From contig NC_135769.1 in assembly GCF_052425735.1 (NCBI RefSeq), positions 1,984,001 through 2,048,000 on the forward strand: a DNA stretch of 64,000 nucleotides, in the 5' to 3' direction. Below the pieces are notes generated by a model. The model had not been told where the DNA came from, searched no databases, and saw nothing but the letters and a program-made list of their open reading frames with translations. The stretch's first letter is position 1; the number at the start of each line of letters is the position of its first letter. The stretch comes from Oculina patagonica (taxonomy: Eukaryota). Below, in pieces: positions 34,606 to 36,479 of this stretch. The translations under genes and the position numbers were made by a program.

Positions 34606-36479
34606 TTATTTTCGTTTTCCAAGTTTATGAATCCAGTTCTTGAACTTCTGGAACAGTTTTTTAAACATTCCTTTCTCGGCTTCTTCTTCTTCTTTTTCTT
34701 CTTCTTTTTCTTCAGCTTCCTCGATGTCGTCGTTTAGCTTTAATCGTTTGTTGGCGTCCCATTCACTGTAATCGACGCTGTTGAACACAAATAAAACAAA
34801 ACAACTTAGTTGTGAGTAAAAAATTTCATAAGGGAAATGGTCAAAACTATTGTACTCAGACAGGACCCACCAGGACAGAACCCACCCCTCCCCCCACCCC
34901 CTCTACCCCACCTTCTCTACCCCACCTTAAAAGATGGTGTCTTGTTTGTATTCCCCCACTCTATCAGGAGTAGAAACTAAGAAAAAGATTCAAACATCCT
35001 TGTGCCATTTCTCCAGCAAGGCAAGCTTCATTCACACCTAATATGAAAGTCTTAACTCGAATTTTGAAGCCAATAAATTCTGTCCATTTGGCTAATCAGA
35101 CAGGTGGTATCTTGCATAGCCCCCCTACCCATACACAAGGTGGGTCCTTGTCGAGTACACTAGTTATGACCACTTCCCTTAAAACCTACTGCTTGGGGAT
35201 ATTAAAGTTCCACTGTGTCTCAAATAGTTTACTTTTACTACACTGTCGGCGGTACAGGCGCTTACAGACAAACTATCATTTGAACATAAGGTATAGTACT
35301 GTCAGATTTATTGTCCTTTTTTTCCGGAAAACACACATTCACAGGCTTTCCTGGATTATAGTGTCGAATGAGCAATTCTCGAAAGCCGTTCCCTACATTT
35401 GTTAACTCCATGGGTGGTAGTTTACACAACAACCTCGGCAAGTCAAAAACAGTTAAAACTCGATAATGAGGATTCGATAATGGGATCAACCAGTCGCCGG
35501 ACCGGCAGCTTGTAGCGTTGATCGGATCATCAATATGTACGGAAGTGTTGATTAAATATTTTGTATTTTTTTCTCCTCATTTTCTCTTTGTATAAGGCAA
35601 ACTAAGTAAAATAAAAATCACACGAAAGTTGCCTATGAGGACAGATGTGTGGTACCCATGCATAGAATTATTACAACTTATATGATTTGACCCAGAAACT
35701 CATATGGGTTTCAGTTTGATCAGTCCTAATTCTATCTTAAAGCATTCCTATTGACGATCTTTTAATTTGTTGAGTACGAGCTAAGAGTTCATCTTTAAGT
35801 AACTCTTCAGTTACGAAATCGATGAAATCGATGAAAGAACGCGAGAATTGACATCATGTAAATCAACGTCTTCGGAAAACTACAGACCGTTTTCGTCAAG
35901 TAAAAAAATTATTTTTGTAGTTGAGCTTCTTAAAAAAAAATTCTGTAAATAGATGACAACGAATTTTTAAGTCAAAAGTTGGTGGAGTTTCTAATAAAAT
36001 CTTTTCTTTGTATTCACTCATACTGATTTAGAGCGAACACCAACAATCTCTAAAAGGAACTAACGCCCAGTTTTGTGAGCCAAGATGTATACATTTTGCT
36101 TTTTTCCTTAACCCGACGAACGTTGTAATTATTTATATTAGAGAAACTCCTCGAGTTCATAATTCCTTATGACGACTACATGTCAAATAATTTCAAGTAC
36201 TATTTACCTTTTTCTTTTCTCAATTTCATCCTTGTCTTGAGAAAAAAATAAATCATCGTCGGTGTTTTCGCCGTCGTCTTCATCAAAATCTCTTTTTCCA
36301 CCGTAGCGGCTTTCCAGCCCTATCTCTCTGTCATCAAGACCATGGTCGTTTTCTTCAGCCAACTTCTCCGCTTCGAGCTTGAAATCAAAATTATTTTCAT
36401 TCTCCTTGCCAGCAGCAAAAATACTCCAAGAGGAGGAAAAGATTACAAAAAGTAATGTAGTCAAAAACGCTCTGTGCAT
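34606..36479 (-). CDS. Prepropeptide, 147 aa: signal peptide, acidic spacers with dibasic sites, C-terminal amphipathic cationic peptide GMFKKLFQKFKNWIHKL-GKRK; putative amidated antimicrobial/cytolytic peptide (exons 36479-36208, 34777-34606)
   Basis: Signal MHRAFLTTLLFVIFSSSWSIFAA; donor AAAAG|GTAAAT (phase 2) joins acceptor TTCAACAG|CGTC in frame; KR/KRK sites; G-KRK amidation signal before the stop. Function is inferred. Confidence 0.85.

Follow-up and report, generated by a model that had tools for sequence, protein, structure and literature searches.

A coral gene encoding an acidic precursor with a conserved C-terminal 17-residue amphipathic helix, presumably released as an amide

Does the coral Oculina patagonica encode a precursor of an amidated amphipathic-helix peptide, and, if so, is the peptide directed at membranes or at a receptor, or is the precursor not cut at all? 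The question is raised by a 64,000-nucleotide stretch of contig NC_135769.1 (RefSeq assembly GCF_052425735.1, positions 1,984,001 to 2,048,000), hereafter the window, whose coordinates are used for all Oculina features. Two open reading frames (ORFs), both present on its minus strand at 36204-36479 and 34606-34788, were proposed in the initial annotation to be spliced into one 147-aa precursor of a short membrane-lytic antimicrobial peptide (AMP) or venom peptide. The following alternatives are considered here: the C-terminal peptide could be processed, amidated and used in host defence at membranes; it could be processed in the same way and serve as a signal; the protein could remain uncut, as an acid-rich component of matrix or granules; or the peptide could be a venom component.

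The splice was assessed from transcripts, genomic loci and RefSeq models of relatives. Joining 36479-36208 to 34777-34606 on the minus strand yields an ORF of 147 aa. The coding part of exon 1 (36479-36208) starts with the ATG at 36479 and comprises residues 1-90 and the first two bases of codon 91, and that of exon 2 (34777-34606) contributes the third base of codon 91 (Ser) and then encodes residues 92-147 up to the stop TAA at 34608-34606. The intron between them (36207-34778, 1430 nt) is a GT..AG intron of phase 2 with the donor AAAAG|GTAAAT, the acceptor TTCAACAG|C and a polypyrimidine tract before the latter. Two transcript contigs of other corals (L001 and L002), encoding proteins of 148 and 141 aa, read through the junction as ...EKRK-S-VDYSEW... 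and align to the window in two blocks, the first ending at 36208 and the second starting at about 34777-34782. An intron of 739-1433 nt occupies the same codon position, in the same phase, in the genomic loci of four other corals (L006, L007, L010 and L011), and a Pocillopora verrucosa transcript (L015) matches its own chromosome (L014) in two blocks with the same junction and an intron of 930 nt. RefSeq contains two-exon models in three genera, Orbicella, Pocillopora and Acropora. The splice is taken as real because of the relatives' spliced transcripts, the shared phase-2 intron and the Pocillopora alignment of transcript to genome, and the two-exon gene model that had been proposed is almost certainly correct. 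A 2578-nt contig of run SRR28110921, which a paper assigns to Oculina patagonica (PMC12856378), matches window positions 37707-35130 with 99.8% identity. In assembly GCA_044670265.1 one contig, 99.7% identical to the window over 6.8 kb, carries both exons; the spliced Oculina product is absent from the protein collection, where the exact 147-aa sequence itself was not looked up.

The spliced product is laid out as a prepropeptide with an amidation signal, in agreement with the initial annotation. Residues 1-24 (36408-36479, minus strand) form a predicted signal peptide, assigned together with its cleavage site by inspection only: the n-region is basic (MHR), the core is hydrophobic, and small residues form the c-region, which ends in A-A-G; orthologues repeat the pattern ...FA[AV]G|KE. 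Exon 1 further encodes the N-terminal part of an acidic propiece, with conserved LDDRE, DDDLFFSQD and E-KRK motifs, and residues 92-126 (34672-34776, minus strand) make up its C-terminal half, which contains an invariant motif of the VDYSEW type and a Glu-rich spacer whose last residues are Glu-Lys. The net charge of the propiece is -25 in Oculina (17 Asp vs 25 Glu) and varies from -9 to -31 across the family. Directly behind the spacer lies the 17-residue peptide GMFKKLFQKFKNWIHKL (residues 127-143; 34621-34671, minus strand), presumably the mature product, with the character of a cationic amphipathic helix; it is preceded by the Glu-rich stretch ...EEEEAEK and followed by G-KRK and the stop. 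The invariant Glu-Lys before the peptide is a putative monobasic cleavage site, and Gly144-Lys-Arg-Lys (34609-34620, minus strand) is predicted to provide the amidation donor Gly and the basic residues to be trimmed. The peptide contains five Lys and no acidic residue, with hydrophobic residues at positions 2, 3, 6, 7, 10, 13, 14 and 17; its coordinates, residue counts and both flanks are exactly as first described. No Cys occurs after the signal peptide in any of the eight full-length members inspected.

A second amidated peptide, which might have been cut at RYGGKR in exon 1 (residues 59-64; 36288-36305, minus strand), was considered and rejected, since this site is not kept in the orthologues, where RSGEKR, RYKGNT, EGNR and other sequences stand in its place.

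The 17-mer recurs in about 55 proteins, representing 23 distinct variants, and we also collected orthologous exon-1 proteins (n = 11, 66-79% identity) and exon-2 ORFs (n = 18). The length of 17 residues is fixed in all 23 variants. The eight hydrophobic positions are likewise hydrophobic in 23 of 23, although the residues themselves swap (M/L/V/I/F, W/L/M), and the polar face is nearly fixed; position 8 is occupied by Glu in 14 of the 23. In an alignment of 12 full-length proteins spanning the split between complex and robust corals (A2, numbered by the Orbicella protein P0013), the invariant columns include K87, S88, Y91, S92, W94, E123, K124, G125, G142 and K143. Around the peptide, the invariant elements of this alignment are Glu-Lys-Gly, which forms the N-terminal junction, Lys-Asn, which takes up positions 11-12 of the 17-mer, and Gly-Lys, which immediately follows it; in the propiece they are the motifs DL.F..D and KS..YS.W. 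Most members have Lys immediately before the peptide (P1), but P0029 and P0032 have Arg there. Behind GK(R) the tail is variable: a stop, TQD, TQH, IDE, Lys-stop (in Pocillopora) or longer tails that differ from each other. An invariant Gly-Lys followed by a free tail is what one would expect of a functional unit that ends at Gly, with the remainder discarded. Two of the outcomes that would have spoken against the initial annotation, lack of a spliced transcript and lack of conservation of the 17-mer, are not borne out, as spliced transcripts occur in relatives and the 17-mer is conserved.

Four called products (P0027, P0030, P0031 and P0044) extend beyond the usual stop behind GKRK(TQD), the added sequence being unrelated. 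In the case of P0030 the stop is present in the retrieved DNA (L011), a locus flagged because its translation did not match the query. Such extensions are gene-calling or allelic differences and affect a part of the protein that would be removed in any case.

Selection was estimated from Nei-Gojobori counts in seven coding sequences, the figures for the peptide comparing Oculina with the six others. For the 17-mer with its GKR, pN was 0.04-0.08 and pS 0.48-0.97, giving omega of about 0.03-0.09 (a range that includes the L006/L007 pair). Omega was higher in the propiece (0.11-0.19) and in the signal peptide (about 0.25 or more), all these values being rough, given the shortness of the regions and the nearly saturated synonymous sites. 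By these counts, constraint within the precursor is greatest in the 17-mer, which is under strong purifying selection.

The helical periodicity noted in the initial annotation is borne out by calculation. The hydrophobic moment of the Oculina 17-mer is 0.75 (Fauchere-Pliska scale), with a sharp peak at 100 degrees per residue, and only 0.06% of shuffled sequences reach it; among 15 tested variants the moment is 0.70-0.84, reached by at most 0.22% of shuffles. The net charge (K+R-D-E) is +5 in Oculina and +3 to +5 among these variants; it becomes about +6 in the Oculina peptide if a free N-terminus is counted and the C-terminus is amidated. AlphaFold, given the A2 alignment with the Orbicella orthologue as the target, returned a poor model overall (mean pLDDT 57), in which the C-terminal helix 108-146 is the sole part with a block-mean pLDDT of 70-82. 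The model hence predicts a helical C-terminal segment.

The family appears to be a coral one. An exhaustive profile search, covering 1.84 billion representative proteins, returned 21 representatives at E <= 0.001, all of them belonging to this family, and word-based searches with each exon also returned this family alone. Orbicella and Pocillopora, both robust corals, and Acropora, a complex one, account for the named members; in neither type of search was a match named from outside Scleractinia, many matches carrying no name. A Pfam scan of both exon products gave sub-threshold low-complexity matches only, and the best match of the 24-residue C-terminal piece in a PDB sequence search was an unrelated repeat protein (E-value 0.53). 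One further oddity concerns a 45-aa coral fragment, P0048, whose 90%-identity cluster includes a 400-aa 'NnrS family protein' from Colwellia (P0081); this looks like a clustering artefact.

One copy of the gene was found in the window and one in each of four orthologous loci of 20 kb. Two tblastn matches that might have indicated paralogues in the window (30215-30385 and 17934-18005) proved to be acidic low-complexity sequence. Spliced full-length forms have been assembled from many independent RNA data sets of relatives, for example with 42, 8, 4 and 4 contigs for Pocillopora cluster members, 34 for the complex-type P0066 and 20 for P0070, a member of the Acropora palmata cluster; therefore, the gene is commonly expressed in relatives. 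Public annotation conceals the family, so that expression studies are unable to interpret it: the two-exon models of Pocillopora verrucosa (XP_058950490.1) and Pocillopora damicornis (XP_027041053.1) are both called 'pre-rRNA-processing protein TSR1 homolog', that of Acropora palmata (XP_074638283.1) is 'uncharacterized protein LOC141896819', and the Orbicella member P0013 is 'glutamic acid-rich protein-like'. The misleading names of the Pocillopora (P0035, P0049) and Orbicella (P0013) products probably stem from low-complexity poly-Glu matches.

How would such a precursor be used? After removal of the signal peptide, the acidic propiece would mask the cationic helix in transit. An endoprotease of the convertase type would then cleave behind the basic residue of both junctions, a carboxypeptidase would remove the C-terminal basic residues, and the exposed Gly would be converted into the C-terminal amide, yielding GMFKKLFQKFKNWIHKL-NH2. 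Judging by the arrangement and conservation of the junctions, we consider processing to this amidated 17-mer probable. With less assurance, we infer that the freed peptide may adopt an amphipathic helix on anionic membranes and act as a host-defence or microbiome-controlling peptide on coral surfaces, the layout being comparable to that of Hydra arminin and of the linear helical peptides of frogs and arthropods. A membrane-directed role in host defence is the best single reading of this anatomy, and we give it about an even chance. In its favour are the hydrophobic pattern, which is preserved by residue class, the cationic peptide joined to an anionic propiece, and a neighbouring gene with the same layout (described below).

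At the level of sequence, the precursor has the features of linear cationic alpha-helical host-defence prepropeptides, that is, a signal peptide, an anionic propiece with a basic site, a Cys-free cationic amphipathic peptide and a C-terminal Gly with basic residues, this being a functional class and not a homology family. Precursors from frog skin (dermaseptin-type), spiders (latarcin-type) and scorpions consist of a signal peptide, an acidic spacer, a basic site and a short cationic helix with a C-terminal Gly as the amide donor, and the coral precursor shows the same layout. The lineages are unrelated, and no homology was detectable in the Pfam, PDB and profile searches; moreover, the mature peptide is hypervariable in those families, whereas it is the most conserved part of the coral gene. 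In the processing quadruplet of latarcins, Arg stands at P1 and Glu at P2-P4. The likeness of the coral EAEK junction to this quadruplet, pointed out in the initial annotation, is a loose one: Glu at P2 is indeed invariant in A2, but the quadruplet ends in Arg, whereas the coral P1 residue is mostly Lys, with Arg in the two members mentioned above.

Among cnidarians, AMP precursors of Hydra are bipartite with oppositely charged halves, and their families are multi-paralogue, fast-evolving and genus-restricted (PMC10945409). Arminin of Hydra is named as an alpha-helical cnidarian AMP in two reviews of 2025, in which all the stony-coral AMPs listed, damicornin and AmAMP1, are Cys-rich (PMC12466427, PMC11767717), as the initial annotation had stated. 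Arminin (arminin 1a-C) resembles the coral precursor in being secreted and bipartite: an anionic N-terminal part is followed by the active peptide, which is helical, cationic and devoid of Cys. However, arminins are confined to Hydra, where they form many clustered, fast-evolving paralogues, whereas the coral gene is single-copy, slowly evolving and present in both coral branches; the coral peptide is also shorter (17 residues) and is flanked by explicit Glu-Lys and Gly-Lys-Arg junctions. Homology to arminins was not detected, the profile search having given the coral family only. Damicornin and AmAMP1 come from the same organisms and are likewise secreted, cationic and released from a larger precursor, but they have six cysteines, in contrast to a predicted single helix with none past the signal peptide. 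No amidated amphipathic-helix peptide of this type has been described so far in stony corals; the peptide strings and protein accessions gave no match in the searchable literature.

Several observations weigh against a role in host defence or against the processing scheme. The gene has a single copy per locus, evolves slowly and occurs in complex as well as robust corals, unlike known cnidarian AMPs; neither the paralogue expansion typical of AMPs (in the window and the four 20-kb loci) nor a fast-diverging mature peptide (by omega) was found. The invariant Lys11-Asn12 and the conserved polar face suggest a recognition more specific than generic membrane binding. The charge of the propiece, -25 vs about +5 of the peptide, is far beyond the need for neutralisation, and the propiece has invariant motifs of its own. 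Finally, the N-terminal cut site is monobasic and non-canonical, and cleavage might also occur at the internal Lys-Lys and Arg-Lys pairs.

If an amidated linear helix is indeed released from these precursors, it would represent a second, structurally different effector class beside the Cys-rich AMPs in both major branches of reef-building corals, with relevance to coral disease, to control of the mucus microbiome and to studies of symbiosis. Because it evolves unusually slowly, the gene also lends itself to the question of whether the conserved cationic helices of early-branching animals serve in defence, as signals or both.

The features that fit poorly with defence leave room for a signal, and the main rival is a processed, amidated 17-mer acting on a receptor as a neuropeptide or hormone, possibly with an antimicrobial role as a secondary one. 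Strong purifying selection, the fixed length, the invariant K11-N12 pair and the near-invariant polar face all fit this explanation, as does a single-copy gene kept in complex and robust corals alike. The GKR amidation signal is the standard site of cnidarian preprohormones, and the preprohormones of Antho-RFamide, GLWamide and GPRGamide have, like the coral precursor, a signal peptide, a G-K-R site and acidic residues beside the N-terminus of the peptide (PMC7523074). Known cnidarian neuropeptides, however, are short, mostly without acidic residues and usually present in many copies per precursor (PMC7523074), whereas here a single 17-mer amphipathic helix is found, and in most orthologues it has Glu at position 8. 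The single copy and Glu8 thus lower the plausibility of a neuropeptide, although single-copy preprohormones do exist (PMC7523074).

The seven scleractinian neuropeptide families of the hexacoral survey do not include the coral 17-mer precursor, but the survey relied on a script requiring at least three similar copies and on TBLASTN and Regex searches seeded with known neuropeptides, which a single-copy precursor of an unknown family would escape (PMC7523074). An overlap between AMPs and neuropeptides is documented for neuron-derived peptides of Hydra (PMC10945409). On the hydrophobic face, changes conserve the residue class and not the residue identity, as would be expected of contact with a membrane more than of a fit into a tight receptor pocket.

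The neighbourhood of the gene bears on the same alternative. Its upstream neighbour encodes a class A G-protein-coupled receptor (GPCR; 43741-44466 and 41049-41588, minus strand), whose best solved relatives are peptide receptors, namely NPFF1R (E = 2e-26) and the orexin and galanin receptors. This GPCR is conserved as a neighbour in six corals, with 73-90% identity between species (L006, 3117-3839; L007, 661-1482; L010, 1467-2351; L011, 2155-3237; L014, 1-2028); it lies on the same strand as the precursor gene in Oculina, L006, L007, L010 and L011 and is inverted in Pocillopora. The adjacency is a weak argument, since peptide-type GPCRs are numerous in cnidarians and coral gene order is often conserved, and we treat it as a lead, not as evidence. 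Taken together, a signalling role for the 17-mer is possible but rather unlikely. Its most specific form is a shade less likely still: the 17-mer amide as an ancient peptide messenger, shared by the two main scleractinian branches, with a specific receptor, possibly antimicrobial as well, which would constitute a new class of single-copy, long, helical cnidarian signals, with the gene kept beside a peptide-type GPCR in robust corals.

Both explanations considered so far presuppose cleavage. Alternatively, the protein could stay uncut, as a secreted acid-rich component of the calcifying matrix or of granule packaging, with the helix serving as a membrane, mineral or sorting anchor. The named members are confined to Scleractinia, the calcifying order, the acidity of the propiece and its DL.F..D and KS..YS.W motifs go beyond what masking needs, and one member bears the RefSeq name 'glutamic acid-rich protein-like'. 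But an invariant Gly-Lys with a free tail is predicted by an amidation and cleavage site and not by an anchor, and the propiece varies threefold in length and charge and evolves faster than the peptide, while the 17-mer is fixed. The composition also speaks against a skeletal protein: the known skeletal acidic proteins of corals are Asp-rich, whereas Glu equals or exceeds Asp in six of the eight members counted (the exceptions listed are P0036, with D 16 and E 12, and P0066 and P0040, with equal numbers). We regard an intact acid-rich protein as improbable.

A cytolytic venom component, packaged in cnidocytes or venom gland cells and aimed at prey or competitors and not at microbes, appears equally doubtful, for although the peptide has the properties of short cytolytic helices (charge of about +6, moment of 0.75, richness in Phe and Trp) and an acidic propiece with a basic cleavage site recalls venom peptide precursors, venom genes typically diversify and duplicate, whereas this gene is single-copy, under strong purifying selection and without similarity to toxin families in Pfam or PDB.

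The neighbour that shares the layout of the host-defence candidate lies downstream, in convergent orientation. It comprises 30137-30390 and 31461-31800 (plus strand), separated by a phase-2 intron, and encodes 197 aa, in which a signal peptide precedes a propiece rich in Asp and Glu; about 100 residues of Pro-Arg-Ile repeats follow, with G-KKKR-stop at the end. This is presumably the first of the two prepropeptides counted in the initial annotation. By its composition it looks like a proline/arginine-rich AMP-like precursor organized as the 17-mer gene is. An orthologue occupies the syntenic place in L010 (15493-14269), and none was seen within 10 kb in L006, L007 and L011. The propieces of the two genes were also compared as possible homologues, and this was rejected (hhalign probability 0.5%).

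Two hexamers flank the coding sequence of the 17-mer gene. On the 3' side, AATAAA (34605-34610, minus strand) overlaps the stop codon and is a candidate polyadenylation signal; the similarity of the transcript contigs L001 and L002 to the window extends past the stop, to 34543 and 34565. On the 5' side, TATATA (36567-36572, minus strand), 88 nt upstream of the ATG, is a candidate TATA box.

Elsewhere in the window, an ORF at 16821-17231 (minus strand) contains the astacin-type zinc metalloprotease motif HExxHxxGFxHE and is probably an exon of an astacin-like gene. A 733-aa ORF at 51108-53309 (plus strand) looks like the reverse transcriptase of a non-LTR (long terminal repeat) retrotransposon, and several ORFs at 59325-63050 (minus strand) are similar to exons of a gene for a GMC oxidoreductase or a choline-dehydrogenase-like protein. 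The ORFs 20584-20865 and 25598-25873 are near-identical, as are 23187-23537 and 28152-28631 (all on the minus strand); they indicate a local duplication or a repeated element with a period of about 5 kb.

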